From: Setoptus koraiensis
Taxonomy: Eukaryota; Animalia; Arthropoda
Assembly: GCA_048013815.1 (NCBI GenBank)
Contig: CM106586.1
Location: 22,444,001-22,508,000, forward strand
DNA: 64,000 nucleotides
Reading direction: 5' to 3'
The notes beneath the pieces are model-generated. The model ran no database searches and was not told where the DNA came from. It was given only the letters and a program-made list of their open reading frames with translations. Position numbers and translations under genes: made by a program. Shown piece after piece: positions 6,001 through 61,559 of the stretch. The first letter of the stretch is position 1. Every line of letters begins with the position of its first letter.

Positions 6001-9000
6001 GCCCGCTTATGACCACATGGTGACTCACTGGCGCCCGCTGGTGGCTGGTGGCCAGCGCGGCCTGTTCGTCGTATCTCACCAAACACTTGAGCATTTTGTA
6101 CAATTTGCGGGAGTGTCGCGGGCGCCGCTTGCAGCGCAACAATGCCGCATCGGTCTCGTTCTCGAGGGCGCGGCGCGATTGCTGCGCCAGTCTATCCTTG
6201 CGAGCTTGCGTTGCGCTCATGCCCACAGGCCGGCTCTTCACGCCGGCCGCGTCGGCCGACTGGTCGAACAGGCCACTTCCGGTTCCGGTCGGTGTCGGCT
6301 GGAGCAGCAGTGGGCTGTCTGGCAGTTGCTGAATTTGAGTATCGACGTAAAATTTGATCTGCTGTTGGTGCGGCCACACGCAGCTCGCCGGGTCGTCGGG
6401 GTCGCCAGCGTCCAGGTCGTCGTAATTGTTGTCGTTGCTGGTGCTGTCGGTATCACAACTGGCGCTCTTGAGCGGGCCCACATTCAAGCTGGGCATCTCG
6501 ACGGGCAGCAGGGGCCGCACGAGCTCCAGATAGGGGTCGTTGAAAAAGAATTGGTCGTTCAGAATGAGCTCGCCAACGAAGGTCGCCCGATCATTGTGGT
6601 CACTCGTATGTCCGTGGCTCGCTTGCTCAGGCCTGGCCCGGTGCAACGGCGCCACACTGGCCGTGGGCGCCTCCCTCGAACACATCACGTCTGAGGGATG
6701 CTGGCCGCTTCCGGTTGGGGCACTTTGGAAGGAATTCATTGAGGCACTGGACGACATTTTGAATGGTTGCCGGCTCTGCTTGAAACTGGTGGCGTCGTTG
6801 TGTCGCGGGCGTCGCATCAAGTCGTGCGACGACGACGACGACGGAAACTGGCGTTGTATGCTGGACAGCATCATCGACGCCATTGGCTGACCGGAAACAG
6901 TCTGATGCTGCTGCTGCTGGTACGGGTTGTGGTGTTGCTGGTGAAGGTAAGCGTTGACTGGAAAGATGGCGGCCGGGGCGGCGTTGCCGTTGTCGTAGTG
7001 GCGCGGGTATGCCGACAAGGGGCTCGCATAAAACGACCCGTCAAACTGACCGCTTGCCGTTTCATCGACGCTGCTCAGCTCGTGATGATAGCTCGCCGGA
7101 AACGGAGGCTCAGCGTGAAACGATCCTGGCGAGCCCATGTAATGATGGCTGTTGTAATAATTGTTCAATATGTAGGCGGCGCTGTCTTGGCCGGGCGATT
7201 GCTGGAAGGATTGGTGCGGTTGTTGGCTGCTGAACAAGTGCGCTTGCTGCTGTTGCTGCTGGCTGTAGAAACTGTTTGCCGCCGCCTGGTGGTGGTGGTG
7301 GCCGGCAAGCGCCAATTGATCGTGATACGAGCAAGATTGTCGCATTACGCGCATGGCGCCACCCGGTGGCGGCAAATTGGTGGCTGGCGAGCAGCAGTTG
7401 ACCACTTGTTGTTGGTTGATCAATTGGTGATGGGTGTGGCTGGCGGTGTTGCCGGTCAGCATCAGCGAGGCGGGCCGGTGCGCTTGCGACGCCGGGTAAT
7501 GGCCGGCGTTGATCAGTGCTGAGCTGCACTGATCCGCATAGTTGGTGCCCGGTGGCGGTGCAATGGCGGGCATTAGCAGCGGATTCTGAAAGAAAATCTC
7601 CGGTCGGTTTGAGTGCTGGCCCGCGACGCCGGCCGGCCCGAACGGGCTGCCGCGTTGCGGGCCGCCGTGATAGTGAATGCCCGACTTGATTTGAAGCGGC
7701 GTTGCGCGCCCGTGGTGGCGCACATCCGAAGAGTTGTCGCTACTGTTGTTATTGTTTATTGATATCGAGTCGACACTGGTGGCCATTTCGGGCGTTTGAG
7801 TGGACGGCGACGGCGACAAGCTCAACTTGGACCCGTTAGAGGGTGCAGCGCGCGCATTGTCTTGCTGTGCTGGATTGTGCTGATTGTTGTCGCTGTTGTT
7901 GTTGGTTGTGGTGCCCACCGACAGGGAGCTAGAAATGGACGATGTGTCGCCCGTGGACAGCGACGATTGCGTGCTCAGCACCGACCGGGACCCGGCCGAA
8001 CCGGAACCGGAGCCGGTTTGTTTGGCGGGCTGTGGCTGGTGTTGTTGCAGTTGTAGTTGCAGTTGTTGTTGTTGGCTGACTAGCGGCAGGTCGGCGTTGC
8101 CGTGGTGATGATGATGGCTAACTATTATGGGCTTAGAGGCAAATGTTCTGGTTGTTTGTTTCACGCTGCTGGTGGTTGCCTTGTTGGCTGTCAGGGGCGC
8201 TGGCTGCAACGCCAAGAGCTTGGCGCGACCCGGCTTGTGCTCTATGAGTTGCTGCTGATACTGCTGATGGGGATAGGAGAAGAAATTGTTTGTTGAGAAA
8301 GACTTTGTAATGGGATACAATTTTTCCGCCTGATTTGTCACAACTACGGGCCGGCGCGCGTTGCCCGCGCCCACCAATTGGCTGTCTAGCGGCACCGAGT
8401 ATACGTTTGTGACGGTGAGCTCGTGGTCTAGCCGTTGCTTTTGGGCCAGCAGTTGCTGCTGTTGCAGCTTGCTGGCGCCGCTTTTGCTGTTGTCACTAAT
8501 TAGCTGTTGTTGTCTATTGTTGTTGTTGTTGTTGTTGTTGTGTTTGGTGGAAAATTTAAATTTAAATTGGTTCAAATCGTTCAATTGGTTGGAGCTAGAC
8601 ACAGGCAATGGAGTTAATTGAATGCACGGTTGCGCAACGATGTTCATGTGACTAGTGGCAAGCTCGTGGCCGTTCAATGTGGTTGTTGCGCTCTTTTTCA
8701 CGAGGCTCTTCTTTTTCTTGCTCTTCGTCTTGGCGCTCGGGGGGCCGTTGCTCGCTTGCTGGCCAATTCTGGTGCTGCTGTTGCTGCTTGTGGAATTCAC
8801 TTGGGAATTAATTGGGAGCTCGCCGGCCACGGTGGACCGGTGCCCGAAAACGTGCGACTTGCTGGTTGTTGGGGCATTTTGGCTTGAATTTCTCGTTGCT
8901 GTAATGCTCGAATTGGCTTGATGTGGAGCGCCGCGCAACGGCGAACATGACGCAACGCCGCTGCCGCCGCTCACCTGTGCGCCGCTGTCTGCTTGGGTAT

Positions 9001-9186
9001 TTATGTAAATTGCATTGGACACGGTTTGTTGGCTGCCCATCGAGTGGTTGTCGCCCGATGACGACGCGCCCGACACACAATTGGGCACGGGGTACTGCTC
9101 GCCGGGTATATACTCGAAATTGGAGGCCGTGTCCGGCTCGGCGCTCGAGTTGCGCAGGTGGTTGCGGTGTCTTCGCAGTTTGGCCA
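50..9186 (-). CDS. TANC: TANC1/2 / rolling pebbles-family scaffold protein (P-loop NTPase, ankyrin repeats; TPR part expected beyond the left edge). Exons 9186-644, 438-360, 213-50; 3'-partial
   Basis: Walker A GPTGSGKT (5981-6004), LLAYHYCQ, Walker B IIVIDALDEA, FPSWIKF, then several ankyrin repeats. Phase-compatible GT-AG splicing (donors GTGAGC at 643, GTGAGT at 359, GTGAGC at 49) gives LKMLVDSGANFEHKDKNGLRLLDRVIAQYCAASQDNMILIEYLLQNGAKLGSKTWECANGKLVILDALLKKLCQDGYYLYK, which resembles the TANC ankyrin-to-TPR junction. Confidence 0.88.
3132..3220 (-). repeat. 24-bp coding tandem repeat (ADRKSHES/ADRKSHDS, ~4 copies) inside the TANC exon
   Basis: tgcgacttccggtcggcgctgtca units start at 3132, 3156, 3180 and 3204 (last partial). 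Confidence 0.9.
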
Positions 9187-9200
9187 CTGTTTCAGTGTGC

Positions 9201-9340
9201 ATTTCGGTGAATTTCGATGGGTTTCGATGGGTTTCGGTGAATTTCGGTGAATTTCGGTGAATTTCGGTGAATTTCGGTGAATTTCGGTGAATTTCGGTGA
9301 ATTTCGGTGAATTTCGATGAATATCAGTGAATTTCGATGG
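9201..9340. repeat. 10-bp tandem array (ATTTCGGTGA)n, ~14 units, in the putative TANC intron
   Basis: Seven consecutive perfect units at 9241-9310, flanked by degenerate units. Confidence 0.95.
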
Positions 9341-9862
9341 ATTTGACATATTTCGGTGCATTTCGACATATTTTGATGGATTTCGATGCATTTTGACGGA
9401 TTTCGACATTTTTCGGGATTGCATTCACAGATAGTTGGGTTGTTTGCGGGCAGCGATGGGGGCGAAACGGTGAGAGAGAAATGTCGAGATCGAAATGGTG
9501 AGAGGGAAACGTCAAGATCGAAATGGTGAATTCGGCAGATCATCGCGAGCGATCAATTTAAGACACTCTGGAATCGCATTCTGGAATCGCACTCTGGGAT
9601 CGCACTCTGAAACCAATTTCCGAAATAAATTTCCGAAATCAAACTCTGACCACCGGAGATGTCGGAGGGCGTGTTCGGGTATGCGCGGTTTGTTCGGGCG
9701 CCGGTCGGCCGGACAACTGGCGCGACAGGCGGCGGGACCCGTCGCCCGCCGGCCCGGCTGCTCGGCCGCTCGCCGCGACTCACAACTACACACAAACAAA
9801 CATGTAAATACACACAAATAAACATGTAAATGCACACAAATAAACGTATTGCTGATACTCAC

Positions 9863-10311: not shown

Positions 10312-11507
10312 ATGATTGTCGCGTTATGTAATTGTTGCTGTTGTTGTGGTTGTTGTTGCGTTGCGATGCGTGGGCGCCGGTCATCGTTGGCCGGCTCGCG
10401 TCGGCCGGGCTGGCGGTTGAGAGTGATTGTCGGCGTGTCACTTGCGATCGGGCGCATTCTTATTCGCGACGGGCGCGTTCATGGTGAGCATCGTCATTAG
10501 CTGTCGTTAATGATAATTAACCATAATTGAGCTATCGTTAGCTGGCGCGTATTGTTTATTGATTTGTTATTGTTGCGATTATTATTATTATTATTATTGT
10601 TCACTATTAATCATAACTTTGTTGTTGTGCAGCCCGTTGCCCGCTAATTAGCGCCGCCGTTGCTTGCTCATGTTTCTAATTGCTATGTTTGTGAATACTG
10701 TTGCGCAATATTGCGGATGCTGCTGTTGTGTTTGTGGATATTGTTGCCGTTCGCTGGGCTGTTGCTCGTCTTCGTTATCGTCTAGCTATTATTATCTCGT
10801 TGTTATCATCTCGTCGGCGACGCATCTATCGCGTCTTGCCATGCCCGTACTGCGGCTGTATGTCGCGACTCGCGAGCAGTATATATCGTGTGTATTTCGT
10901 GTGTATAAATCAGCGTTTGTGTGTATAAATCAGCGTTCGTGTGTGTATATCAGTGCTTGCAGTATAGCGAGTTGCGTATTATTAACCTTTCTTCTCCTTC
11001 TCTGTTTGTCGCGAGCTTGCCGTGGTGTGCGATATGCGCTCTTCTCGGCTGCTCTCCCGTCTGCGCGGCTGTCTACGCGGCCGTCTCGTCGCCCGACTGT
11101 CGCCGGGCTATCGGGCTGCTGGGTGCATGCAATTCGCTGGGCTTGCTGTGGCTTGCAGTGGCGGCGGTGGCGGCGGTGGCGCCAGCAACGGCGGCGTTTA
11201 GTTTCATGCGAGCGATTACGTAAAAACAAACACAGTATGCCAGTTGAGCGTCGACGATAATTTCAAGTTAACACCACTCCGGCATAATGCAATTTATGTC
11301 CCGTCTCGTGTGCGTATGTGTGTGCCATTGTTGGCCATTGTGTGCCCAAAGGATTCGTTGAAAATGCTTCTCGACAATTGTAGGCGCTGGCTCGCCAGCG
11401 AACGCGCGAACAGGCGAATGATGGAACAAGCGCGAAGGCGAATGATGGAACAAGCGCAAAAGCGAACAGCCGAATAAGCGAGCGCGATATTTCGTGCCAC
11501 TGGCAGC

Positions 11508-25700: not shown

Positions 25701-26069
25701 GCGCCCGACGCCGGCCCGGATAATGATGCCGGCCCCGCAGAGGCGCGCAGTAATGACACGAGCCAGCCGACTGCACCTACCGAAAGTTTCAAACAAAAGC
25801 TGGCGGCGCTGGCATTTTTTGCTGCCGGCTCGCACAATATTATATACTGTTACGTAACCTCGTATCATTCGAGTCGTATAATGCGAGTCGTATAATGCGC
25901 GAGTGATACGCGAGCAAAGAGAGTGATACGACTCGTCTCATACGAGGCCAAAAGATGCGCCCCAAATTGCGAGTTTGGCGCCGCTCGCGGGTAATGGGCG
26001 CCCGCTCGGCACACGCCGCCAACCATTTATATTGTGCGGGGTCGGGTATGTCCGCGTTTGTGTATGTGC

Positions 26070-26314
26070 TGTAACGATCGTATCGGTCTGGTAGGCTATT
26101 TTGGGGGCGTTTTCTTTTTGGTAGGCCACGGCCTCTTTATTATACATATATTTGTACAGTGAGTGAGTACTTGATTATAGTGAGTATTGAGCGAATGAGT
26201 GAGTGAACGCGACTCATGAGTGAATATCGACTCAGTGACTTGAGTCGGTTTATATAGCCCTCGTGAGGGCGACCCCTAGCGGGTTAGTTTGACGGGGCGG
26301 ATTCGACCGTCACA
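26070..26314 (-). repeat. 3' LTR (245 bp)
   Basis: Identical to 32957-33201 except at 26101, 26113 and 26121. Minus-strand TATATAAA at 26256-26249 and AATAAA at 26141-26136. Confidence 0.97.
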
Positions 26315-26318
26315 ATCG

Positions 26319-26326
26319 TCCCTTCC
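26319..26326 (-). other. Short polypurine tract GGAAGGGA upstream of the 3' LTR
   Basis: Purine run 4 nt from the LTR edge on the element's sense strand. It is short for a PPT. Confidence 0.55.
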
Positions 26327-26349
26327 AGATTTTACTCGCCTCGAGTAAA

Positions 26350-27252
26350 TCACTGCTGAGGCCCCTTGCCTAACAGGTTGGCTTTAATTGTTTCGCCAGG
26401 CTTGACCTCACGAGGTACAACTACCAAGTAGTTGGTTTGCCGTCGTCGTAGACCGGCTGCCCATAGGGTTTCACAGGTGCGGAGAGAAACGGACTCCATA
26501 TATAATACATCGAAGTTATAATCAGGTATGTTTAGTCGTTCCTTGATTATTTTGCCAATGGCTGACGTTTTGGTATTCCTATGGACTGACATCTTGATGT
26601 CCTCTCTTCCTTTGCTGGAAATTTGTATCTCTAGGAGATCAGTACCTGTGGGATGATCGGGCCCCAAGGCTCTGTTGTTGACATTGGTCAGTATTCCGTC
26701 TATTCTGATCGGTTGTTCGACTGGCTCGCATGATGCGGCTACTGCTGGTCCGTCTGGCACCTCTGGAGGTTCTGGTGCGTTTCTTGGTGGACTAGTTGGC
26801 TCCTCTTTGACTTCTACTTTTACCTTCTTTAGGTTCACGTGAATCAATTGGGATACCTCTTGAGGTCGTTGTGTCTCTCTTTTAATAGTGGCTATAACCA
26901 ATTTCCTCTCTAATTCTTCGAGCCGATTCATGATATTGGCTTGCTTATCAAGCTGCTGTTGAGCTACAGCTTGGCCTTCTTGTAGAACGCTGATCTTCTG
27001 CTCATAGGTGCCAAGTTTCTCGGTGCAAGTCATAAGATTAAGCTCTAGAGCTTCTATTTTTTTCTTGCTGTCTTCTATTTCTTGCTTTTGCTTGACAATT
27101 AAATCGTTGAGAAAGTCAAACTTCTTTTTTAGCTGTCCACTCATGTCGACTAAACCATTCCGGACATGTCGGAGTCGGTCTCCGATGACTTCGGTGCAGA
27201 CATGTTGTTCTTCTTCGGTGAATCCGCACAACGGGCATCTAGATGTGTCCAT
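26350..27252 (-). CDS. Retrotransposon accessory ORF3 (300 aa): CxxC-x7-HxC motif, ~100-aa coiled coil, Pro-rich linker, C-terminal ubiquitin-like fold; not env
   Basis: Intact ORF between the pol stop and the 3' LTR, with the element's base composition. No signal peptide or TM segment. The C-terminal ~75 aa align by eye with the ubiquitin beta-grasp pattern. Confidence 0.85.
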   Translation of the reverse strand: MDTSRCPLCGFTEEEQHVCTEVIGDRLRHVRNGLVDMSGQLKKKFDFLNDLIVKQKQEIEDSKKKIEALELNLMTCTEKLGTYEQKISVLQEGQAVAQQQLDKQANIMNRLEELERKLVIATIKRETQRPQEVSQLIHVNLKKVKVEVKEEPTSPPRNAPEPPEVPDGPAVAASCEPVEQPIRIDGILTNVNNRALGPDHPTGTDLLEIQISSKGREDIKMSVHRNTKTSAIGKIIKERLNIPDYNFDVLYMESVSLRTCETLWAAGLRRRQTNYLVVVPREVKPGETIKANLLGKGPQQ

Positions 27253-27665
27253 TTTTGAATATTTTAATTATTTGCTAGGTCTTGACCTCTTGTTGTTGTT
27301 AAATATTTGTGTTGGTCAATGGATTGCTGTCTTGGTAATAATCAATTTATATATTAGGTCTTGACCTTGTGTATCTTAGTGTGAAATGAGCGTGGTATGG
27401 TGTGCTCGCGCATTCGAGCATGTGTGACGATAGGGTTGAGCGTGTTGTTGAGCGACACTATGGTAATGTAGTTCAACACGTTGTTTTAGGTAACAGCGCG
27501 TAAATTCAAATCGTGTTATGGCACCGGAAGTTGTGTGAATAGTTTGATTATAAGCGGTGTCATTGCTATTTCTTGATTCATGAATATTTACATAATGTTG
27601 AGATCTTGATCTTTCTAGTTGGAATTTGAGGTTTTGACCTCTATATTCTGTTCGCCCCTACCGAG

Positions 27666-30600
27666 TCAAGACTCGCCTCGAGTCTGATACTCTTTGAGGT
27701 GGTTGACGTGAACTATGAGTTCTTTCTTTGTTGAATCTTCAACTATTTGATAGTTCAAATCACTAAATTTTTTGACAACTGTATATGGACCACGGTATTT
27801 GATCTTAAATTTTTTCGATTCGCCTGCATGGTAATGCGGTCGATATAACAAAACTTTCTGACCTACAGCAAACGTTTTCTCTCGATGGTTCTCGTTGTGA
27901 CGAGTAATTCTTGTTTGCTGATTCTTCTGGATAAGCTTTTGAGCGAAGCTTCGTAGCTCTTGTCGCTTCTCGTGGTCGTGACCATCTTTTTGAATTGTTT
28001 CTAGCATTAAATCAATTGGTAGTGTTGGCTCTCTGCCAAACACTAGCACATATGGCAGTTGCTTGTGAGATTCATGTATAGTTGTGTTATAGGCGTAGGC
28101 CAGGGCCTCGACATATGAACACCAACTCTTCGGCTTGTCATGAGCAAAGATTGCTAATTGATTGCCTAATGTCTTGTTGTATCTCTCCACCTGTCCGTTA
28201 CCTTGCGGTCTGTAAGGACTGGTAGTTCGGTGTTTGATCCTGTTGGACTCAAAAAATTGTTCCATCACGTCCGAAGTCAAATTCGAACCATTATCGGTGA
28301 TTATAGTGTTCGGAAAACCATACGCGTAGAACACATTGAGTTCTAGAACTCGTTTAATTATGTCACTGGACGCTTCCTTAATTGCCTTGGCAATGACAAA
28401 CTTTGTTAAATAATCGGTTATCGTAATTATGTACTGATTACGTAACGATGATGGTGGCAAAGGTCCAATGAGGTCTAGACCTAATGTTTCAAAGATTTGT
28501 GATGGAATTGGTATCGAACCAAGTAAACCATACGGTTTATCATGTCTACTCTTCCGCTTCTGACAGATATCGCATGTCTTGACATATTTATGCACATCTT
28601 CTTGAAGAGTGTTCCAGAAAAATCTGTCTCTAACTGAATTAAGTGTTCGTTTGCCAAAGTGACCACCCGTTGGTTGGTCGTGCATAATGTTCAGCACATT
28701 ACTGACCATTGACTTTGGGAGCATCAACAAGTAATTAGTTGTGTGAGGTCTGCGACCTCGTCTATACAACTTGCCGTCAATTAATTTAAACTTCTTCATT
28801 AAGCCTTTCGCTTGCTTCGGTTTCAATTGTGGCTGTTGTAGAATCTCAATGATCTTCTTGAGATCTTCTTGCTTGAGTTGTTCTGTTGCTACGTCTTTAA
28901 TTGGCAACAACGGTAATGCTATATCCTCTTGAGGAGTCGTAGTTCGTCTTGATCTGGTGACCACATTCACTGGCCACGTTGGTACGTCGTCGCTGTACGT
29001 CTTGACGTTCTCACTATCCTCTGGATATCTTGATAAACAGTCAGCATCGTTGTGGCTACGACCTGTATTATATTGTATCTTAAATTTATACTCCTGGAGT
29101 AACAAAGCCCACTTAATTAGTCGACCTAACGGGTCTTTGAGGCTCATGAGCCAACACAAAGCATGATGATCTGTTTGAATTGTGAACTCATGACCGAATA
29201 AGTAAGTTCTCCAATGAGTTACGCAATGAACTAAAGCTAAGCATTCTTTATGAGTTGTCGAATAGTTTAGTTCTGCTCCCTGTAACTTTCTGCTGGTGAA
29301 TGCTATTACACCTTTCTTCACAGAGTCCTGACTCTCTTGCAACAAAACACCGCCTAGACCATAGCCTGAGGCATCACATCTGATTGTCAGGTGTCCTTTC
29401 TGGTCGTAATGGACAAGCACCGGCGGATTGGTTAGCTTCCTCTTGAGGACTTCTAATGCAACTTCCGCTTCCGGTGTCCATTGGAATTTTTGTTTCGTTC
29501 TTAGAGTGTCTGTTATTGGCTTTGCGTGACTCGCAAAGTCCTTGATGTAACGCCTAAAGAAATTGCACATCCCCATGAAGCTACGTGCTTCAGTGAGGCT
29601 CTTCGGGCTTCGAAATTGCGTAATCGCAGTTATCTTCGACGGGTCGGGCTTGATACCTTCGGGTGTAACTATGTGGCCCAGATACATGATTGAGTTGAAT
29701 GCCATCTCGCATTTCTTTGCATTCAACCTGATGTTGGCCTCATGAAGGCGCCCAAAAAGTTTCTCTAGAGAACTCAAATGTTGTTCAAACGTCTGCGTGT
29801 AGACTAATACGTCGTCATAGAACACAAAACATTCGTTCTCCATGTTACGAGTTACGTCATTCATTACTCGCATCGCGGTCATCGGGGCTGACACCAAGCC
29901 AAACGGCATAACGTTGAACTCATATTGGCCTAAGTGTACCACGAAAGCTGTCTTTTGGCGATCTTCGTCGCACATCTGGACTTGCCAGTACATGGCTTTC
30001 ACGTCTAGCTTACTAAACCAGTGATTACCTGATAGATTCTCTAGCACTTGTTCCATATTTGGAATCGGATAGGCGTCAGTCTTTGTTATCTTGTTCAATT
30101 TGCGATAATCCACGCAAAATCGAAGGTCTGACGTACCTCTTTTCTTCACTAAGACGACTGGACTAGCCCAAGGGCTCCTTGATGGTCGTATTATTTGTGC
30201 ATCTAACATTTTCTCTACCATGGTCTTAATAACTTCACGTTCCTTCTTGGATACGTAGTAAGGTTTGGTTGCAATCGGTGATGCTTCACCTGTATCTATG
30301 TGGTGACGGATGTGAGGTACTAAACCTATCTCTTCGTCATTGCTGACAAATATTGACTTGTGTTTGTCTATCATATTCTTCAATGCGCTGCGTTGTTTAT
30401 CTTCTAGAAGATTATTTATCACTATATCTTCATGACAACTTGCACTTTCTCGTTGGTCCAGACCACTTATTGAACCGACATTGGTATTCTTGTCGATGTA
30501 GACAGTATTGTTCGACACATTAAATACTTCTATTGTTGATGGTCTGTTCTTTATCACACCTGGAACAAACGAAAGTCCAGACTTATGATGAGGTTCGATG

Positions 30601-32708
30601 ATTAACAATTCATCTTCTATGTTTTGAGGTTTCACTAACATCACCGCTCTATGAGCCGGTGGAATGATTGTATGTTGACACGACTTGAGAACTGGTTCTT
30701 CTTTATCACTGTCGTTCTGTTCTATAAGTGTCACTTGGTTGATCTTGATCACTCCTTTCGGATATTCAATAAACAATTCTTGTTTTGATTTATCTTCCTC
30801 TGGTTCGATGGCGTTGATTGTGTTGAGTTCTTGAACTTCCGTATCACATTGACAACAATTGTCTACCTTCAGAGGTCGACTGTTCTCTATGTATCGACGA
30901 GCATATCGATCGATGTAACGGTCATGATACGTCACGACGTTGTCCGGAAATGACATAACCATACCTGCCTTGTGGGCGTAATCTCTACCCAACAGTACAT
31001 CAGGTGCGTTACGTAAGATGAGGGCCGAAATTGTTATAGTCCGTTGGTCATAGACTATAAACAATTCGCAATATCCAAGTGGCGCTTCTTGATGACCATC
31101 TGCCAATCTGACCAGCGGTCCTTTCCATCGATAGACCGGTGTCCACGTCTTTTCTGCCAAGCTTGCGGGTATTATCGTACAAAAGGCACCTGAATCCAGG
31201 GTTGCCTTGAGTTCCACTCCGTTGACTCTGACATTGAGGACCTGAAATGGGTCTCGCTTTCCACTTGTGGATATGTTTGCAACTTCAACTGATGATAATC
31301 CATCTCTTTCAGTTGATAACAACGACTCGATCTCTGGAGATTCTTCTCTGTAATTGAGGTAAATGCCTGGTTGCTGTTCGGCCGCATTCACCTTCCTTGA
31401 TCTCGCTGGATATTTCGGTGTCGTTGCCTCTGCGGGCTTCTCTACTTTCTCTTGAGAATTCTTCTCTTGTGACCATTTAGGACATGTCCTTACATAATGG
31501 CCTTTCTCTTTACAGTGGTGGCATTCGACGTTCTTCATACGTTCTTGCCTAGCCACTTCATTTTCTTTTTTGGGTGATGGTGGTGACTTTCTCGGTTCGT
31601 AAGGCTTCCTCGTATACCGCGTTGTCTTCTCTGTTCGTTTATTCTTCCATGAAACGTTCAAGAGCTTGACCATTCTTAATAGATTGACTAGCGTTTGAGG
31701 ATCATGCATCTTCACGGTCTCTTGAGACTCACTATCTAACCCTTTTATCACATACGAGATGATAGCTCGTTCGGACATGTTCTTATCTAACATCCGACAC
31801 AGCTCGATCACTCGATCATAATAGCTCAGAGGAGATTCTGTAGGGTCTCGACCCACCATTCTGAGTTTTTCTCTGAGTATGTCTTCTTCGTTGCCGATGA
31901 AGAAGTGTTGTTTGAATTTATCTTCAAATTCTAACCAAGTTCTTGGATTTCTATCACTGAATGTATTGTGATACCATGATCTGGCACTGCCCTCTAATGA
32001 TCCCCTGGCTTGGGCGATCTTGACTGGTTCAGTCCACGAATTAATATCAGCAATATCATTGAATTTAAACAAGAACTCCATGGAGTCATCAGCGTCTCCC
32101 TTGAAGACTGGAGCTCTTCTAGCTTCTATCTTCTGATGTATAACGATCGTTGCCTCTCTCGCTGGTAACGTCGAACTTGTTTCATTGTCGCTTAAATCGA
32201 GCAACAGTGTGTTGTCGGTTGCGTCCTGAGCATGCGTTCGTCGTTCATCCGGAACCGACTTATCAACAGGCGCGCGATTCGAACCGACTTCTTGAGGTCT
32301 CGGGCTCTCGAGCCTCCCTAATAAGAGATTCATCATTCTCTCGTTCGACTCTTGTATCGCCGACAGGATATTCATATTCTGTCTCTCACTAGATTCTTGT
32401 ATCGTTGTCAAGATATCTCGATTTTGGTTCGTCAAGAGCTCCATTGACTTCCAGAAGTCCTCTTTTGATTCACGTTGATATATAGATGTCTGAATCGAAT
32501 GTTGTACCAACAAACTCAATGATTCCTGTAAGGTCGGCGTGACATCACCTGTATTCTCTTCATCCAGTAGACTCATTCGAGACTGCTCAACCTGACCCTC
32601 AGGTATTGTTTCTTGAGTATCTGTACTCTTGGCAGCTTGACTTCTTGTCGTAACTCCTGGTTTCTCTTGAGAATTACCGAGGTTCTTTGTCTGGTCTTGA
32701 CCACTCAT
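27666..32708 (-). CDS. Gag-Pol polyprotein (1680 aa) in a single frame
   Basis: Capsid-like region (PVFKGDADD...SARSWY), CCHC knuckle CHHCKEKGHYVRTC, protease LDSGA, RT (WASPVVLV, LRFCVDYRKLN, MPFGL, FYDD), RNase H (CDASGYGLG, TDH, DCLSR), integrase HHCC + D,D(35)E (LDLIGP, TDNGSN, ERYN) and GPY module. Confidence 0.97.
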   Translation of the reverse strand: MSGQDQTKNLGNSQEKPGVTTRSQAAKSTDTQETIPEGQVEQSRMSLLDEENTGDVTPTLQESLSLLVQHSIQTSIYQRESKEDFWKSMELLTNQNRDILTTIQESSERQNMNILSAIQESNERMMNLLLGRLESPRPQEVGSNRAPVDKSVPDERRTHAQDATDNTLLLDLSDNETSSTLPAREATIVIHQKIEARRAPVFKGDADDSMEFLFKFNDIADINSWTEPVKIAQARGSLEGSARSWYHNTFSDRNPRTWLEFEDKFKQHFFIGNEEDILREKLRMVGRDPTESPLSYYDRVIELCRMLDKNMSERAIISYVIKGLDSESQETVKMHDPQTLVNLLRMVKLLNVSWKNKRTEKTTRYTRKPYEPRKSPPSPKKENEVARQERMKNVECHHCKEKGHYVRTCPKWSQEKNSQEKVEKPAEATTPKYPARSRKVNAAEQQPGIYLNYREESPEIESLLSTERDGLSSVEVANISTSGKRDPFQVLNVRVNGVELKATLDSGAFCTIIPASLAEKTWTPVYRWKGPLVRLADGHQEAPLGYCELFIVYDQRTITISALILRNAPDVLLGRDYAHKAGMVMSFPDNVVTYHDRYIDRYARRYIENSRPLKVDNCCQCDTEVQELNTINAIEPEEDKSKQELFIEYPKGVIKINQVTLIEQNDSDKEEPVLKSCQHTIIPPAHRAVMLVKPQNIEDELLIIEPHHKSGLSFVPGVIKNRPSTIEVFNVSNNTVYIDKNTNVGSISGLDQRESASCHEDIVINNLLEDKQRSALKNMIDKHKSIFVSNDEEIGLVPHIRHHIDTGEASPIATKPYYVSKKEREVIKTMVEKMLDAQIIRPSRSPWASPVVLVKKRGTSDLRFCVDYRKLNKITKTDAYPIPNMEQVLENLSGNHWFSKLDVKAMYWQVQMCDEDRQKTAFVVHLGQYEFNVMPFGLVSAPMTAMRVMNDVTRNMENECFVFYDDVLVYTQTFEQHLSSLEKLFGRLHEANIRLNAKKCEMAFNSIMYLGHIVTPEGIKPDPSKITAITQFRSPKSLTEARSFMGMCNFFRRYIKDFASHAKPITDTLRTKQKFQWTPEAEVALEVLKRKLTNPPVLVHYDQKGHLTIRCDASGYGLGGVLLQESQDSVKKGVIAFTSRKLQGAELNYSTTHKECLALVHCVTHWRTYLFGHEFTIQTDHHALCWLMSLKDPLGRLIKWALLLQEYKFKIQYNTGRSHNDADCLSRYPEDSENVKTYSDDVPTWPVNVVTRSRRTTTPQEDIALPLLPIKDVATEQLKQEDLKKIIEILQQPQLKPKQAKGLMKKFKLIDGKLYRRGRRPHTTNYLLMLPKSMVSNVLNIMHDQPTGGHFGKRTLNSVRDRFFWNTLQEDVHKYVKTCDICQKRKSRHDKPYGLLGSIPIPSQIFETLGLDLIGPLPPSSLRNQYIITITDYLTKFVIAKAIKEASSDIIKRVLELNVFYAYGFPNTIITDNGSNLTSDVMEQFFESNRIKHRTTSPYRPQGNGQVERYNKTLGNQLAIFAHDKPKSWCSYVEALAYAYNTTIHESHKQLPYVLVFGREPTLPIDLMLETIQKDGHDHEKRQELRSFAQKLIQKNQQTRITRHNENHREKTFAVGQKVLLYRPHYHAGESKKFKIKYRGPYTVVKKFSDLNYQIVEDSTKKELIVHVNHLKEYQTRGES

Positions 32709-32940
32709 ATCTATATTTCTCTATCAACTGAATTCAGGAATTCAAATTATCAATGGCAGTTCTTGAACTCTTGCCTCCTCTACTAACCGAATATCGTTTT
32801 GTTCTGATAGCTTTTGAGCTTTCTCTTAGCTCCTGAGCTCTATCAATTTTCTATAGCTTCTGAGCTTCTTTATACCTAATTAGCTCCTGAGCTTGTCCAC
32901 GAGTTCTTTCTCGGTGAGATAACCTGATCAATAGGCTTCT

Positions 32941-32954
32941 CGGCGTCTCCACCA
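32941..32954 (-). other. Primer-binding site TGGTGGAGACGCCG, probably for tRNA-Ala
   Basis: Lies 2 nt inside the 5' LTR. It is complementary to a tRNA 3' end CGGCGTCTCCACCA; eukaryotic tRNA-Ala ends ...CGGCATCTCCACCA (recalled, not searched). Confidence 0.8.
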
Positions 32955-32956
32955 AT

Positions 32957-33201
32957 TGTAACGATCGTATCGGTCTGGTAGGCTATTCTGGGGGCGTTTA
33001 CTTTTTGATAGGCCACGGCCTCTTTATTATACATATATTTGTACAGTGAGTGAGTACTTGATTATAGTGAGTATTGAGCGAATGAGTGAGTGAACGCGAC
33101 TCATGAGTGAATATCGACTCAGTGACTTGAGTCGGTTTATATAGCCCTCGTGAGGGCGACCCCTAGCGGGTTAGTTTGACGGGGCGGATTCGACCGTCAC
33201 A
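32957..33201 (-). repeat. 5' LTR (245 bp)
   Basis: Paired with 26070-26314. TATATAAA at 33143-33136 on the minus strand. Confidence 0.97.
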
Positions 33202-34916
33202 GTGCACGCGGCCAATTGTTTCAATTTCGCTGCCCGTCCGGTGGCCCCTTCAGCGTGCCGAATCGCTTCGAAGCGCTCGCCGATCGGTTCGAGTCGGGCG
33301 GGCAACCATCGGATCGCGGGACGGCCGCAGCAATTTGATGGTTGCCCGCCCGACGCGCCGCCTCAATATAATGGGGGCCCCGTTTTATACGGGCCGTATG
33401 ATGCAATATAATGCAGTGCAGTGCCGGCTAATTGTGTGTCTGTGTGCACCATTTACCGCGCCCGATGCGGCGCCGGCCCGGCCGTATAATTTGCTGGCCG
33501 GCTGGCTGACGAGCGCAATAACATGACGTATTTCATCTTTTTCGCGGCTCCGCCGCTGAAATGTATTAATAAATCTAACTTATGCGGCTTATGCCGGCGC
33601 ACACTGTGCGTCGGGCGCACTCGCGGGCCCCAACGGGGCCCCTCCGAGGCACCCCCAACTGAGCGTGTAATAGAGCCCGGCGAGCAGCACAAATGTTCAT
33701 ATGCGAGTCTATAGTGAGTCTATGGCGAGTTTTTAGTGAGTTTACAGCGAGCGCCGCGAACCTTGTCGCGCTCTCAAGTCGCTTCGCCTCGCTTCTCGAA
33801 CACGACTCACTTTCGAGAGAATATCCGGATAAAAATGTAGCGACAGCGACACAAGGACAACGGGGATTAGGGCACGGGCCGGCGCAAGTTTATCCGCACA
33901 ACATCGTCTTGCGATGCTTGATTGACCAGACGGTGTGTTGGCTGTAAAATGCTCACTGCTCCATTTATTATCCATGTATTATCCGCGCACAGAGATTACC
34001 CGCTCGCCGTGTATCTACAACTGTGATTATTTGTATCGCGGGGCGGCCACTTGATCAGCGACACGCTGGCAGCGTCGCGCCAGCGACGACGACATCACGA
34101 TGCGATTCGAGCGCCCCTCGCGGGGCCCCCGAATGCGACACTTTATATTCTTGGGACGTGTCGGCACGTGAAATTGTCAACAATCCATTGGCCAAACTCA
34201 CGTGAATGGGGCCCCAACGCGCGCACACACACGCGGAATGTCGAATGAGATTTATGTCAAACAAAGATTATCCATCAATACAAATAAACAACCAACAATC
34301 AATGCGCAATGATAGGCTCGCCCCGTTGCCGTCCATGAATATCCGTGCATGCGCTGCATGCAGTCCCCTCGGCGTTGTCGTTATTTCATCTCTTTATATC
34401 CATCTATCATATCGTTATATCATGTGTGTCGCTGGCAAGCTGCTGGCCGGGCTCCACGGGCCCAGCAAATGAGCAGACGAGCGATAACGAAAAGTTAAAC
34501 ATGCCAGCAAAAAAATGACTGGCCGGCGTGGCAAACATCACAATTTACCAGCAAACATCTCAGAGAAAAAGCACTTAAATCCGCGCCGATGCCAACCGCC
34601 AAAATGATTGATTTTTATGTTTATGTTTGTATAGTGTGCTTGTATCGGTCCGCTTGAGGCTCCCACAACGATTCGCTAAGAGTAATTCGAAGCGAGGCGC
34701 TCACCTTTTCTGAGCGCTGTGACACGCTGGATCGTAACAGCGCGCAAACTCACATGCCAGTTCAAATGGGGCCGAGCAGCGATTGGGGGCCCATCTCGAG
34801 GCCAACTATCGCACCACGCGCGCGTTACTGGCATCGGACTCCGCTGATCGGAGGCACACGAAAATTTAGACAGGGCCGTTTGCTCAACGTGCGAAATCTC
34901 GCCGTACAATATCTCG

Positions 34917-35265
34917 AATCATATATTACATATTTATATATATATATGTAATAGAGACTCCTCACCTCCCGAGTCACCCACGATAGTGGTTGGATTTGCA
35001 CCTCGGGAGGGAGAGGAATCTACAGGCGCTGCCTGTTGTAGCGACAACGACAACAACGACAGATAGATTATAACGAGGACTCTACAGAGTGGCCGTGAAG
35101 TCCTCGTTATAATCTATCTGTTGTTTGTTGTTGCTGTCGCTACAACAGGCAGCGCCTGTATATTCCTCTCCCTCCCGAGGTGCAAATCCAACCACTGTCG
35201 TGGGTGACTCGGGAGGTGAGGAGTCTTTATTACATATCTATATAAATATGTAAATATATATGATT
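34917..35265. repeat. ~350-bp fold-back inverted repeat (arms ~165 bp, 17-nt loop at 35082-35098)
   Basis: gagactcctcacctcccgagtcaccc... at 34954 pairs with ...gggtgactcgggaggtgaggagtct at ~35202-35226. About 6 substitutions and 1 indel in the core. No TSD found. Confidence 0.95.
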
Positions 35266-47363: not shown

Positions 47364-50300
47364 TCAACTCTTGTTTGAGCTCTTGCTGCCGTTCGAGTTA
47401 CTATTGCTATTGACTAGATTTAGGTGCTTGGAAAGAGTTGCCGGCTTCACCGGCGGGGCCGGCTTTGGTTTACATTTGGCCCCGTTCGTATTGTTGTTGC
47501 TGTCTTGATTTAGGCTGGCCAGATTGCCGGCAGGTAGACTAGTTGTTGTTGTTGTTGTTGCTGTTGTTGTTGGTTTTGCATTTTCACTGTCCGATTTTTG
47601 TTTGTCGGCGTCCGTTGTTGCAGTGTTGTTGTTTGTTGTCACGGGTTTTATTATCTCTTTGGGCGTCTTGGCGTCTTGCTGGTTGCTGGCCAATTGCTGC
47701 TGATTAATGTTGGCCGCTACTATTGTGCTCACTTTTCGTATCGCTGCCACCGGTTTAGCTCGATTTACACCGCCTGTTGCTATTGTTTCGTGATTGCAAT
47801 TGGTGGCGATTGGTTTGATATCTTCTGAATTTGAGAATTTGTTCGCGCTGTCCTGTAGTTTGGCCGCCTGAATTGAGGGTCGCACAGGAACTAATGGGGC
47901 TCTGTTGGCACTTGACAGGCCGGTTGTCTGTTGTGTATCCTTGGCCTGGTTTGTGGCGCTTGGTTGCTGTTGAAGTTTTGCGATCATAGACTTGACAGTG
48001 ACCTTCGAAACGGAACTGGAAGAACTGCTCGAACTCATAGTATTTTCTTGTTGCTGCTGCTGTTGCTTTTCAACAGCGACAGGTGGTTCGCTGGTGAACG
48101 TTTTCACTACAACGTGCTCTATTGAACTATTGTCGCAACCAAATTTAAAAAAGTTTCTTGGAATGCGATCGAGACCGGTGGTTGAATGACGCCGATTGTA
48201 GCGATCGGTGCAAGCACGACGAGCGCCACTTGGAGAACGTTGTTCCAATTGTAGCGACTGAGGGGCCGCTATATCATTGTTTTGTTTGGCTGTAGCCTCG
48301 TCATCATCATCTTCATTGATATTCTTTGTTGTTGTTGTCGTCGTTGTTGTTTTGCTAAGCTTGTTTGGCACACTATAAATGGGCTGTTGACTAGAATTAT
48401 CCGTGTTGTTCGCATTGTCATCATTGTTGGTCTCGTTTTGAGCGTGGGCGTTTGTCAATTGTTGATTGAAACGACTGATGATAGAGTTGACTTGATCTCT
48501 ACAGTCCAATTTAACGCCATCATCACGCTTTTTGGCTAGTTGTGACTTTTCCAATTTAGCCATATGTGGTCCATCTATCACCAATGAGTAACTTTCGTCG
48601 CCGATGGCAATTGTTGAGTTGCGTCGCCGGGCTATAGCAGAAGAATAAGTGGGCCTAATAGCGCTGCTGCTGCTGTCCTTGGCGGCTGAACAAATCACAT
48701 CGCTGCCGGTTGTAACGGTTGCCGTGGCAATGCTACGACGTTTGGGCAAACTGGACAACATGGCAACATCATCGGGGCCCACAATGTTGTCCGAATCGTT
48801 TAACTCGTCCCTTCCGTTCGGGGCTAATCCGCTCGGGGCTAATCCGTTCGTTCGCTCACAAACGTGCTGACTGTTTTCATGGGCCAAAGCTATTGTAGTT
48901 TCGTCGGCCTCCGACTGCTTATCGCTGCTCTTCGGAGGCTGCTGAGCGGGCCTCTTCCTTCTCAGCGTGAACTTTATGTGACCCGAATCATCAATTGCTG
49001 CGCACAATTCTTCGTCTGTCAACGTCTCGGCATCGCGTGATCTCCTTTTGGCCATTCGCTTCAGTTCCTGATGGACAAATAGAATGGATGATTCAATAGG
49101 TAGAGGGCGTTAGATTGGTGAATAGAAAGGTTGACAGGTTTATCATTGATGGAAGCTCGTTATTATTATACACAAGCACGACCAAAGAAATTGTTGAATT
49201 CTTTTGTGCGCCAAAAGAATTCAAATGAAACAACAAAATTCATGACATAAGCAATTCAATTAGGATAAACTAAATAAACTAAACAATAGCTTACTGAAAC
49301 ATCGATGTAGAAAACGTCGTCTTGTGGCTGGGTCTGATCAATCAAAACGTTGAGAGTGGCTTGTTTTTTTGCCACTTGTGTCCCCTTTTCATCGGCTCTG
49401 TCGTGGTTGTTGACTTGATGGTGTTCGCAGGATCTTGCATCATCTTCGCGCTGCTGCTCAGTTTGTGTGTTGGCCTCGTTCGAGCTGTATAACGCGCCAG
49501 CCTGAAGATGATCGTGATGATCATGTAAAACTGCCAGCCCTGTATAATAATCATTTGCACGGATCACCTGTTCGGGATCAATTCGCGAATTCGCCCCTTC
49601 GGACAGAGAATCTCGCTCATCGTCATCATCGTTGGAGACATCGTGCTGCGGACTGGACGAGCTGGACGTCATGGTGCCCGTTGACAATAAACTCTCGGCA
49701 TGTTTGTGCGTACTGTGCATAGTTTCCTTGTTCGTCTTGAGTGCAATTAAATAATAACGGGAGTGATGAAATGGTAAATAAACGAAATAATAATAAAACA
49801 ATAATGAAATAATAATGAAATAACAGGGTAATGCAAACAAAAAACTCTCAAATAACAACAACAAAATGATCGAAATGACGATGATGATGGCCGAACGGGC
49901 AGCGGCAAAAGCCGCAAATTCCAACTCGGCCAAATGCGAGCCTCACTTACCTGTGCTATTGGATTCAAGGCGAACTCTATGCCCTGGAGCGCGGTGTGGG
50001 GCGAGGGCGGCGAGGCGTCCGGCGTGCCCGTTTGCGACGCGCACGTATCATCAACGATAGTCTGGCCGTACTGGTCCAACATTTTGTGCCCGCGCTCCCT
50101 AGCGGTCACTTTGGTCGACTGAATGGCGTGATGCAATTGGTCAGCGTCGTCTTCGTGATTGGTGCTGGCAGGCGAATTGCTGGTGCAAACTCCCGAATCT
50201 GGCTGAGAATCGTGATTCATGATCAGATTTACATTGTTGAGATGCAGATTGTTGGTGTGCAGCATAATTTGATTTGTCAGTTGTCTGTTGTTGCTCTTGT

Positions 50301-53300: not shown

Positions 53301-54187
53301 CAACCTGTTGCTGCTGCTGCTGCTGATGCTGCCTGTCCTTTGGGACACTCTTTCCATTGTAATCGAGTGCCGCAGTGGCGCTGTTGGCGGCGCTGTTGAA
53401 TTGACAGAAAATTGCTCTCATTTCGGCGGCTAAGCGATTATTTTGCAATTCATTGTCCATCAATTGCAAACTTGTTCTCTTTCTGCCATCAACCAATGTC
53501 ATGTAATCTATGCCCGATTCCAGCAAACATTTGATTATGTCCAATTTGGCGCCCATAATAGCCTCATGCAACGCGCTACCGTGACTTGTTACATGATTTA
53601 TATTGAAATTGTGCCTCAGCAGCACCTCAACCACTTGCTTGTGACCATTTCTGGCGGCATAATGTAACGGTGAGTGATCTATGCTGACGTTAGAGCCGCT
53701 TGCAGCATTCAACAACGACCTTTGGTCCAATTGTAATAGATTTGATCGCGATTCTAACAACACAACAACTGTCTCTAAACGGCCATATAAACATGCCAGA
53801 TCCAGTGGTGACTCTAAACGTTTGTTGCGTATTAACGGATCAGCGCCACAACTCAACAATAACGCGGCCACTTGAGTGTGGCCAAATTGAGCGGCCAGTG
53901 ACAACGGAGTCTGATGATCATTGTTGATTAAATTGATTTCGGCCAATTGGTTGTGGTTGCCTGCGGCGCTTGCGCCAGTCAACAATAGCTTCACTATTTG
54001 TAAATTGCCAGACCAGGCGGCTAAATGGAGCGCCGACGAGCCTTTATAATCGACTAGATTAACATTGGAACCATATTGCAATAGGATGCCTACCACATGA
54101 GTGTGGCCATTCAAGGCAGCGTGATGTAAACAGGTGAATCCGGTCACTGGGTCTCTAATTCCATTTGGCCCGGGAGCGCGCCGCAAA
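47364..54187 (-). CDS. ANKS1: ANKS1/caskin-family ankyrin-repeat protein. Exons 54187-49951, ~49735-49295, 49067-47364; first exon not located
   Basis: About six ankyrin repeats with ANKS1/caskin-like motifs (TCLHHAALNGH, ALHLAAWSG, PLDLACLYGRLE, PLHYAARNGH, GSALHEA). Consensus donors at 49950 and 49294, acceptors at 54188 and 49068. The middle-exon acceptor (AAG) is less certain. Confidence 0.8.
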
Positions 54188-55679
54188 CTGATAGGTATCG
54201 ATAGAGAGGGCAACAGTTGGAATAAGAGAACGTTAGAGATTGGCTAGTTTCACTTTTTGCAAGACATTTTTTTTGCATAACTTTTCTCTCTTTTCGGAAC
54301 ATTTTTCTTTTTTCAAAATATTTTTCTCTTTTCGGAATATTTTCCCCTTTCAGAGCCATTTTTTCGAAGCGGTTTTTTGGGCAGATTTTTTCAGAGATTT
54401 TTTTTTGCAAAAGTTTGTTCGAAAAAATCTCCCCATTCTCCGGCCGAGAACATGAGCGAACATTGGGTCAGGCTGCTGACAGCTTTGTTTCGATTCGAGG
54501 CATGCGAACGGGGAATTTACAATTCAGAAGTAACTTTGCTTTCCTTGCGCTCAATTTAGATATCATCGGTAATCTAATCTGGGCAGCTATTTAATTTTGT
54601 CTATTTTTTGTGATTCGCACCTAGACCGGCCAGACCAACCAGTTCGGTTGACTGGCTGATGCCAAGTTGAGCTGGCTGCCATTTTCATATGCATCCAGCA
54701 GGCTTTTCATAACTCGGGACTCATGAACTGTTTCGAAATTGTCCGGAATTACAGAGCCAATAATAACCTGAAAACGACACACACATACACTCAGTTGTAG
54801 TAGGAAGAATCTGTTTGCAAGCTAACGGCGAAAAGTGGTTTAGTTGGTTTGGATACTACTGCAAGTGAGTGTGTTTGCGCAAATTTCGTGTGGTTGCGTA
54901 AAAAAAGTTCATATAAACTGTTCACTTTCCCTTACATCATCAACTGAAGAGATATCCTGACATTATGAGATTGTCACGGAATCAGCTGTATCAAAATGTT
55001 GCAAATACAGCGGCTATACTGTAAACTGCAACAACTTTAATAATATCGCCTATACGCAATTAATAGCAGTGGTCATAATTTAGCGGCGAGCTCTAATTAC
55101 TAACTTGTTTATGTGCGCTGATTCCTCGACTAGATCCTCGACTAGAGTGAGCGATGGCAGGTCGCACAACAGTTACTGATGATACCGATGTTGCACTGTC
55201 GCATTAATCAAGTCTCTATCACCTGTTCAACAGTGGCCTCGGCGATATGTGCTACTTAATCAGGACGATACTGTGTCCAGTTATGTTGGGCAACAACAAT
55301 GACAAACAGATAGACAAACATCCTTTGGTTGGTTCCTGCCCGACGCGTTAATGATAAAGTTACTATTACACACAGATATAACTGGTTATTTCTTGGCATT
55401 TAGCGACAAATACGTTGTAGACGCTTTCTCTGCATTTCGAATATTTTTATGTTTCGTTCACAATCGGGCTAATTGCCATCAATTTTTCGCATCATTGTCG
55501 ACAGATGAGCAAACAAATAACAAGTAAATTTTGCACAAATACGAATTACGTGTCGCTTTTCGTACAATTTTGCCACAGTGGGCACAATTTTTTTCCTCGA
55601 AAATATTATGAGACACGCAAATTTAAAACATATTAATCATTAATAAACATCATAAAGATGCCCACAACAAAGTGTAACA

Positions 55680-61193: not shown

Positions 61194-61559
61194 GACGTGC
61201 TAGCTCACACACTAGCAGACACACATTTTCATGTATACAAACAATAAAAAGAGAGACACAGAGAATTGGACCTGATCCAATGTTGTCTAATCTACTGTTC
61301 TCATTAATTTTCACCTCTGTGCGCCTATCTGTTCCTTGTGTTACTTTGTGATGATTAATCAATGGTGATAAGCAATTATCTTTCAGACAATTAACACAAC
61401 AACGAGTGACTATGCGAGCAGGAACAATTGTATCCATCATCAGCATACAAGGTACGGTAGTTGTTGGCGGCAACAAATTTCATTGGGCTTGTTCGCAACA
61501 GGCGCAACAACATCAAAGAATCACTGAGAAAAAAGAATTGCCTCTGCGTACACTAGATC

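Follow-up and report, generated by a model that had tools for sequence, protein, structure and literature searches.

Which gene occupies the env position of a retrotransposon that appears to have no env, and what might its product do for the element? The question is raised by a locus of Setoptus koraiensis, where a Ty3/Gypsy element carries an extra gene, here called ORF3, downstream of pol. We analysed this gene within a stretch of 64,000 nucleotides (GCA_048013815.1, contig CM106586.1, positions 22,444,001 to 22,508,000), to which we refer as the window and to which all coordinates below apply. An earlier note, made from the letters of this stretch, had proposed that ORF3 is a non-env third gene encoding a zinc knuckle, a coiled coil and a ubiquitin/SUMO-like domain. 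Our analysis supports this view of a non-env third gene with three modules, with reservations about two of the modules that are explained below.

A complete Ty3/Gypsy element with an intact third gene

ORF3 lies in an LTR retrotransposon of 7132 bp (26070..33201, minus strand), which we delimited from its pair of LTRs and by reading its ends and flanks. The flanks contain a 4-bp target-site duplication (26066-26069 and 33202-33205). The 5′ LTR (32957..33201, minus strand) is 245 nt long, has TG..CA ends and contains a TATA-like box; the 3′ LTR (26070..26314, minus strand) has the same length, and the two are identical at 242 of 245 positions, with three mismatches. Direct reading of the internal sequence located a primer-binding-site-like stretch that starts with TGG, 2 nt past the 5′ LTR (32939..32954, minus strand), and a polypurine tract 1 base away from the 3′ LTR (26316..26326, minus strand). 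The leader of the element comprises only about 250 nt. Gag and pol are encoded by one uninterrupted ORF of 1680 amino acids (27666..32708, minus strand), in which Pfam recognizes, in order, gag (residues 237-325), a CCHC knuckle (395-411), protease (492-577), reverse transcriptase (854-1014), RNase H (1104-1207), integrase (1331-1501) and an integrase C-terminal domain (1640-1672). According to these matches the gag part is capsid-like and carries a classical CCHC knuckle, and the integrase ends in a GPY/F-type domain, without a chromodomain. The direct LTRs with TG..CA ends, the target-site duplication, the primer-binding site, the polypurine tract and the Gypsy order of domains place the element in the Ty3/Gypsy group (Metaviridae).

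The window contains a single copy of the element, both of whose gene ORFs are intact, with none broken. Because the LTRs are identical at 242 of 245 positions, the target-site duplication is present and gag-pol is uninterrupted, the element is complete and young. Its neighbours in the window are genes for pancreatic-type lipases and a cationic amino-acid transporter, as well as giant ankyrin-repeat ORFs. Rfam and tRNA scans of the 64-kb window gave no matches.

ORF3 itself extends from ATG to stop over 300 codons (26350..27252). The earlier note had reported an intact ORF of this length in the env position without stating its strand; we found it on the minus strand, as is the rest of the element, and rejected a plus-strand reading of the same interval, which is full of stops. 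The gag-pol stop and the ATG, which has the context AAAATGG, are 413 nt apart, and the ORF3 stop precedes the 3′ LTR by 36 nt. The non-coding spacer between pol and ORF3 (27253..27665, minus strand) thus measures 413 nt, with a GC content of 0.375. The gene is bracketed by two identical copies of a 13-nt hairpin motif, both on the minus strand, of which the first lies within the final pol codons (27671..27683) and is followed by a G-rich purine run (27655-27662), and the second lies 3 nt past the ORF3 stop (26334..26346).

The ORF3 product is predicted to have three modules

Searches with the full-length protein were of little help, since Pfam returned only coiled-coil noise and a search of PDB sequences only noise. 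A BLASTP comparison of ORF3 with gag-pol of the same element detected no relation, and ORF3 is therefore not a duplicated piece of gag or integrase.

The N-terminus contains a putative zinc-binding motif, C-x2-C-x7-H-x-C (residues 6-19; 27196..27237, minus strand), which is present in all four of the family members described below, with the second Cys and the His separated by 7 or 8 residues (C-x2-C-x7-8-H-x-C). The motif is followed by a conserved Arg/His-rich stretch. The suggestion of a zinc knuckle in the earlier note thus holds insofar as four potential ligands are present in four of four members, but the spacing is not that of the classical retroviral zf-CCHC motif (C-x2-C-x4-H-x4-C), and there is no Pfam match.

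AlphaFold predicts a single long helix for residues 13-126 (26875..27216, minus strand) with a pLDDT of 83-95; the length of the helix differs between relatives. The fraction of hydrophobic residues at its heptad a and d positions is 0.52-0.58, compared with 0.36 overall. This heptad-like pattern agrees with the previously suggested coiled coil, which the helix probably forms, and judging from the predicted helix, the protein is most likely a coiled-coil oligomer. A linker rich in Pro, Glu and Val comes next (residues 127-185; 26698..26874, minus strand), which is predicted to be disordered and has a psi-K-x-E motif at residue 144, with a second one adjacent to it at residue 148.

The remainder of the protein is a conserved C-terminal domain of about 95-115 amino acids (residues 186-300; 26353..26697, minus strand), with 17 invariant columns in an alignment of the four family members. 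Within it lies the peptide of residues ~205-280 that had been singled out as ubiquitin-like, and which we located at residues 206-279 (26416-26637, minus strand). As had also been observed, there is no di-Gly tail; Gly-Gly is absent throughout the window ORF3, whose conserved tail lacks it as well, so this protein, as judged from its sequence, cannot be conjugated to other proteins. Two of the three relatives (P0001 and P0003) likewise have no Gly-Gly, but the third, P0004, has one located 10 residues before its end, and given this dipeptide the statement may fail for the family as a whole.

ORF3 belongs to a small family maintained by selection

To find relatives, we scanned 1.84 billion representative proteins exhaustively with HMMER. 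Only three true relatives were obtained, namely P0001 (E 1.8e-73), P0003 (E 2.1e-6) and P0004 (E 3.4e-4), and together with the window the family therefore comprises four loci. A fourth match, to the long and repetitive coiled-coil protein P0002, is confined to the helix, and was set aside as spurious. No further members came from word-indexed protein searches, whether ORF3, the four-sequence alignment or the alignment of the C-terminal domain served as query, and no recorded protein was identical to ORF3 or to a host lipase ORF of the window. Metagenome scans with the family alignment and with the single domain found nothing.

All three relatives adjoin LTR-element sequence. On the Logan contig L001, the final codons of a pol ORF are followed by ~600 nt of spacer sequence, then by P0001 and then by the start of an LTR. 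P0003, from the locus L002, is read in two frames, which corresponds to one frameshift or an assembly error, and the upstream part of this copy still codes for the N-terminal module. P0004 comes from a locus, L003, on contig UWJE01007793.1 of an Olea europaea assembly; because the GC content of its flanks is 60-65%, this contig may not be olive DNA. L003, read with flanks of 10 kb, has two tandem elements with the gene in each, ~400 nt past pol and ~36 nt before the LTR region, and holds a complete related element with a 1580-aa gag-pol upstream of P0004. This gag-pol is 44% identical to that of the window overall, with 70% identity in the reverse transcriptase and 30% in the capsid. The same three modules, i.e. 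the Cys2-His-Cys motif, the long helix and the C-terminal domain, are found in all members of the family.

Comparison of these sequences reveals where selection has acted. Between the window and L001, the C-terminal domains share 76% of their amino acids, with pN 0.16 and pS 0.81, the latter being saturated, while the N-termini are 54% identical and the helix and linker only 34%, with changes in length. The most conserved part of ORF3 is thus the C-terminal domain, not the N-terminus. Between the two copies in L003 there are 7 synonymous substitutions and 1 that is non-synonymous (omega ~0.04; binomial P 2.9e-4). Between the subgroups the C-terminal domain has diverged about as fast as the capsid (28% versus 30% identity). 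Finally, the GC content at third codon positions is 0.45 in ORF3 and 0.43 in gag-pol, compared with 0.72-0.76 in the two largest host ORFs and 0.49 in the host lipase ORF; the codon composition of ORF3 is element-like, not host-like.

We therefore regard it as very likely that ORF3 is a real gene under selection. Since non-synonymous change is strongly suppressed while synonymous sites are saturated, and the third-position composition is element-like, the sequences indicate that it is an old, functional resident gene of its Gypsy clade. The opposite view, that ORF3 has no function, being an ORF that arose by chance or the decaying remnant of a host gene picked up by the element, has nothing in its favour except the missing database annotation. 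It conflicts with the conservation of the protein despite saturated synonymous sites, with the 7:1 ratio in L003 and with the element-like composition, and no host parent was detectable among the 1.84 billion representative proteins. The HMMER relatives and the selection analysis together refute it, leaving it a negligible probability.

The same data bear on whether ORF3 could be a degenerate env or another membrane-fusion protein. The position downstream of pol is the one used by errantiviruses, and coiled coils are also found in fusion proteins. However, neither a signal peptide nor a membrane segment is apparent from hydropathy, just as the earlier note had stated: the highest Kyte-Doolittle mean over 19 residues in ORF3 is 0.56, the mean of its 20 N-terminal residues is -0.49, and all four members are alike in this respect, with maxima of 0.3-0.94 and no hydrophobic segment. 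No env or fusion family was matched in Pfam, in PDB sequences or in a viral fold library. Moreover, ORF3 is under purifying selection and therefore is not decaying; a copy disrupted or evolving neutrally would have spoken against the proposal of a third gene, and the family instead has been maintained (pN 0.16 versus pS 0.81, and 7:1). A derivation from env is thus exceedingly improbable.

The C-terminal domain probably has a ubiquitin-like fold

The assertion that the C-terminal domain follows the pattern of ubiquitin was more difficult to evaluate. AlphaFold models of the whole protein and of the domain alone have the same order of elements, beta-beta-alpha-beta-alpha-beta, with strands at residues 206-212, 219-224, 248-251 and 276-279 and helices at 229-240 (12 residues) and 261-265. 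The pLDDT of the domain is 40-79, and the alignment behind the models contains 4 sequences only. The reference topology of the beta-grasp fold is beta-beta-alpha-beta-beta-(short helix)-beta, against which the predicted order is to be read at a pLDDT of about 55-65.

Several kinds of searches led to the same group of proteins. In Pfam, the L002 copy matches the Rad60-SLD family (PF11976) with an E-value of 3.9e-4 and 20.6 bits, where the cut-off is 23.8, over profile positions 1-46 of 72; the window domain matches the same family with E 0.11, and two family members match UCH_UBL1 with E 0.13-0.14. A profile of the domain compared with PDB ranks SUMO2 first (E 0.06), followed by the RAWUL domain of BMI-1 (E 0.12). 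With the L002 domain as a single sequence, the top PDB match is a ubiquitin variant (E 0.67), with nearly the whole fold aligned, and the RBD of ELMO2 is fourth. Foldseek against PDB returned nothing at E<=0.001, its best E-value being 0.6 with TM scores of 0.35-0.5, and about 35 of the top 50 matches are Ubl or beta-grasp proteins as judged by their descriptions. These include Ufm1, SUMO1/2, the UBLs of BAG6, UBL4A and PLIC2, LC3/GABARAP, UBX, the UBLs of USP7, the ELMO RBD and the FERM F1 lobe. In the viral fold library, an entry described as 'ubiquitin family protein' ranks first.

Since the sequence-profile, PDB and Foldseek matches converge on Ubl domains, the C-terminal domain probably adopts a beta-grasp fold, with its core at residues 206-279. 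The proposed ubiquitin pattern therefore has consistent support from the different tools and from the predicted order of elements, but every sequence or fold match is below the curated threshold. Whether the probable Ubl domain is SUMO-like or ubiquitin-like is a further distinction, and the data fit either.

An orphan fold that is not ubiquitin-like, with the Ubl signals being noise attracted by a small beta-alpha domain, would explain why all matches are sub-threshold, why the pLDDT is only 40-79 and why the domain of the L003 copy has no Pfam or PDB match at all. This explanation is rather unlikely, however, as Pfam, the PDB profile, the single-sequence PDB search and Foldseek, used with different members of the family, agree on both superfamily and register, and the succession of strands and helices in the models agrees with a beta-grasp rather than with, for example, an RRM.

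Palindromes and expression signals around ORF3

The spacer upstream of ORF3 (27253..27665) contains three perfect palindromic 12-mers and one imperfect copy. The 64-kb window has 10 perfect AGNTC-NN-GANCT palindromes, and every one of them falls within the 7.1 kb of the element, for which the expected number is 0.17. They concentrate in the leader and in the spacer between pol and ORF3. Six more occur in the 2 kb of L001, and their arms covary. The spacers of the window and L001 can scarcely be aligned except for the pol end and these short palindromes. On the other hand, L002 and L003 have the ORF3 protein but no palindrome of the AGNTC-NN-GANCT form.

A TATA-like octamer is located 101 nt upstream of the ORF3 ATG, and is flanked by two palindromes. 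Since no ATG intervenes between the octamer and the start of the gene, an internal promoter for ORF3 at this site is conceivable. We saw no convincing splice acceptor in the sequence upstream of ORF3.

These palindromes raise the question of whether ORF3 could be a nucleic-acid-binding regulator of its own element, such as a Rev- or CERV-like factor for export or expression, or a factor that binds DNA as a dimer. In its specific form, this explanation would have the zinc motif and the adjacent basic stretch, dimerized by the coiled coil, recognize the palindromic 12-mers of leader and spacer, whereas the C-terminal domain would serve only for interaction with proteins. The confinement of the palindromes to the element within the window (10 versus 0.17 expected), the six in L001 and the covarying arms would be in line with such a function, as would the Cys2-His-Cys motif and conserved Arg/His-rich stretch that close relatives share. 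There is also a precedent in CERV of Cer1, a non-env protein that is needed for the export of genomic RNA (PMC10309623). However, L002 and L003 carry the protein without such palindromes, no known DNA- or RNA-binding family was matched in Pfam or among PDB sequences, and conservation is strongest in the C-terminal domain instead of the N-terminus. We consider a regulator of this kind to be a serious rival, though a rather unlikely one.

A possible role for ORF3

In the reading that we favour, with a probability of roughly 45%, selection maintains ORF3 as an accessory gene in a small clade of Ty3/Gypsy elements that lack env and have gag and pol fused, and the ORF3 product is an oligomeric, Ubl-presenting adaptor. 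The product would be a soluble protein made of a Cys2-His-Cys putative zinc module, a helix of ~110 residues, an acidic and proline-rich disordered linker and a Ubl-like domain. As an oligomer, it could present at least two integral Ubl domains to those host proteins by which Ubl folds are recognized, for example readers of the SIM or UIM type or the SUMO E2, while the zinc module and coiled coil would anchor it to a partner from the element, either nucleic acid or protein. The outcome would be a coupling of the life cycle of the element to the host SUMO/ubiquitin system. That the product engages host Ubl readers is itself a tentative proposal, to which we assign somewhat less than even odds.

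A more specific version of the adaptor relates to host defence. In animals, SUMO plays a central part in silencing transposons, and in Drosophila, SUMO and its ligases are needed for piRNA-guided transposon silencing. Furthermore, SUMO-like domains of the Rad60/NIP45 type act as non-conjugated mimics. By analogy, a SUMO mimic multimerized by a coiled coil might stand in for a poly-SUMO chain, occupy SIM effectors or the SUMO E2, and thereby blunt SUMO-dependent heterochromatin silencing guided by small RNAs. This idea of an anti-silencing decoy is borrowed from Drosophila biology, and we consider it improbable in its specific form; if true, ORF3 would be a transposon counter-defence gene.

Ubl folds are common docking modules, and a Ubl-like domain might alternatively serve in targeting or tethering, by docking on a host chromatin or nuclear-import protein and so steering particles or integration. 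By analogy, the role would be that of chromodomains or of integrase-host contacts in other LTR elements, and the fact that the integrase here ends in a GPY/F-type domain without a chromodomain is compatible with it. On the other hand, the single copy in the window gives no insertion-site preference to read, and no link between ORF3 and the integrase was apparent. Tethering is thus quite improbable as the function of ORF3.

Relationship to known accessory genes and Ubl proteins

With regard to its position, ORF3 most resembles the env gene (ORF3) of insect errantiviruses, which belong to the same superfamily and have env in the same slot, from pol to the polypurine tract and 3′ LTR. The characteristics expected of an errantivirus env are a signal peptide, a C-terminal membrane anchor and similarity to an env or fusion family; none of these was found in ORF3, which encodes a protein of 300 amino acids that is predicted to be soluble.

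With regard to its C-terminal domain, the best Pfam and PDB profile matches are to SUMO and to the SUMO-like domains of Rad60, Esc2 and NIP45 (RENi), which likewise are C-terminal, built into the protein and non-conjugatable. These proteins have a tandem pair of SUMO-like domains, whereas ORF3 has only one, and the remainder of ORF3 is helix and disordered linker. In addition, ORF3 is transposon-borne, scores below the cut-off, and has a zinc motif and a predicted coiled coil that are foreign to that family. The RAWUL domains of PCGF proteins such as BMI-1 are the second-best PDB profile matches (E 0.12-0.6), over the stretch from the helix to the third strand, and PCGF/BMI-1 proteins follow a similar logic, with an N-terminal zinc module and a C-terminal interaction domain of ubiquitin fold. 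However, this match extends over only 26 residues and lacks significance, and ORF3 has no RING finger.

Among accessory proteins of LTR retrotransposons, CERV of the Caenorhabditis elegans Ty3/Gypsy element Cer1 is made from a spliced mRNA and functions in nuclear export of genomic RNA (PMC10309623). CERV and ORF3 are both non-env accessory proteins of Ty3/Gypsy elements, CERV being regulatory and not structural, and the HMMER family scan with ORF3 gave no match to CERV. Drosophila elements of the MDG1 group have two small ORFs upstream of gag, sORF1 and sORF2, of ~110 and ~70 amino acids, the second of which encodes a transmembrane fusogen-like protein (bioRxiv 10.1101/2025.03.14.642691). Like ORF3, both evolve under purifying selection as accessory ORFs of Gypsy elements, here of insects, that have no env, but ORF3 is downstream of pol, and the leader upstream of gag in the window element is only ~250 nt. 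Plant LTR retrotransposons can have lineage-specific extra genes (aORFs) between pol and the 3′ LTR (PMC7264820), which represent the same general phenomenon in another kingdom and in other lineages. In the literature that we searched, these aORFs included, we found no case in which an extra ORF of an LTR retrotransposon encodes a domain resembling ubiquitin or SUMO. Accessory genes of Gypsy elements are thus already known, in the form of env, the MDG1 sORF1 and sORF2, and CERV, and a Ubl-like one is new with respect to that literature.

Extra genes of LTR retrotransposons provide a rare view of the dealings between an element and its host, and env, the sORF2 fusogen and CERV each revealed a new mechanism. 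Even if its function were modest, the ORF3 family marks a new clade of env-less Gypsy elements, and the duplicated module of hairpin and polypurine run that brackets ORF3 gives a hint as to the route by which such genes may be acquired. Because SUMO is central to the silencing of transposons in animals, ORF3 becomes a concrete candidate for counter-defence by a transposon, or else for a new form of host tethering. If the Ubl domain is real, ORF3 would be the first indication we have found of a Gypsy element that plugs directly into the Ubl system of its host.

Protein motifs in ORF3 and its relatives

Residues 144-155 of ORF3, the accessory gene of the Gypsy element (window about 26788-26823, minus strand), comprise two adjacent psi-K-x-E motifs, which resemble the sumoylation consensus, and then Pro-Thr-Ser-Pro. 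The pair of motifs is located in the linker directly upstream of the probable SUMO-like domain. It is kept in the relative P0001, but is not conserved in the relatives P0003 and P0004.

The C-terminal end of P0004 (about 11040-11077 of its locus, L003) carries a Gly-Gly with a tail of 9 residues after it, the arrangement seen in a Ubl precursor. Among the four family members, only P0004 has this Gly-Gly and tail; the other three are without it. L003 lies on contig UWJE01007793.1 of assembly GCA_900603015.1, whose database entry is Olea europaea, and comprises two tandem Gypsy elements that have one LTR in common, with an adjoining short-chain dehydrogenase gene; Ns account for about 5.7 kb of the locus. 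Since the contig flanks have 60-65% GC, their composition suggests that this may not be olive DNA.

Other features of the window

An inverted repeat at 34932-35249 (125-nt arms, 94% complementary, with a 68-nt loop) lies 1.7 kb past the element's 5′ LTR, and has a MITE-like or long-hairpin shape. Two very long uninterrupted ORFs, both on the minus strand, occupy 602-9424 (2940 aa) and 49747-54213 (1488 aa); each has ankyrin repeats at one end, outside which Pfam shows no match. A cluster of three ORFs at 55680-63038, all matching the pancreatic-type lipase family PF00151, has an assembly gap of 500 N (60694-61193) within its middle ORF.

Repeated nucleotide motifs around ORF3

The 64-kb window contains 10 perfect AGNTC-NN-GANCT palindromes, and all of them are inside the element, where shuffled sequences lead us to expect 0.17. 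These 12-mers, at 27041, 27277, 27356, 27601, 28339, 28471, 30826, 32758, 32828 and 32882, cluster in the 5′ leader and in the spacer between pol and ORF3. The P0001 locus, L001, has six within 2 kb (positions 93, 117, 549, 621, 1097 and 1456), and there are none in L002, the P0003 locus, or in L003. The third base of the palindromes covaries with its partner. A dimeric factor could use them as sites, or they could form small hairpins.

The spacer and ORF3 are also bracketed by a duplicated module, in which a G-rich purine run comes after a 13-nt hairpin motif. The pol end has one copy (hairpin at 27671-27683) and the other is immediately 5′ of the 3′ LTR (hairpin at 26334-26346), both on the minus strand; the two hairpins are identical, and these 2 matches compare with 0.05 expected. 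Copies are likewise found in L001 (about 38-52 and 1743-1757), where the stem covaries, and in L003 (about 9543-9556 and 11155-11170). The duplicated module may represent an internal second polypurine tract, or may be a trace of gene acquisition.
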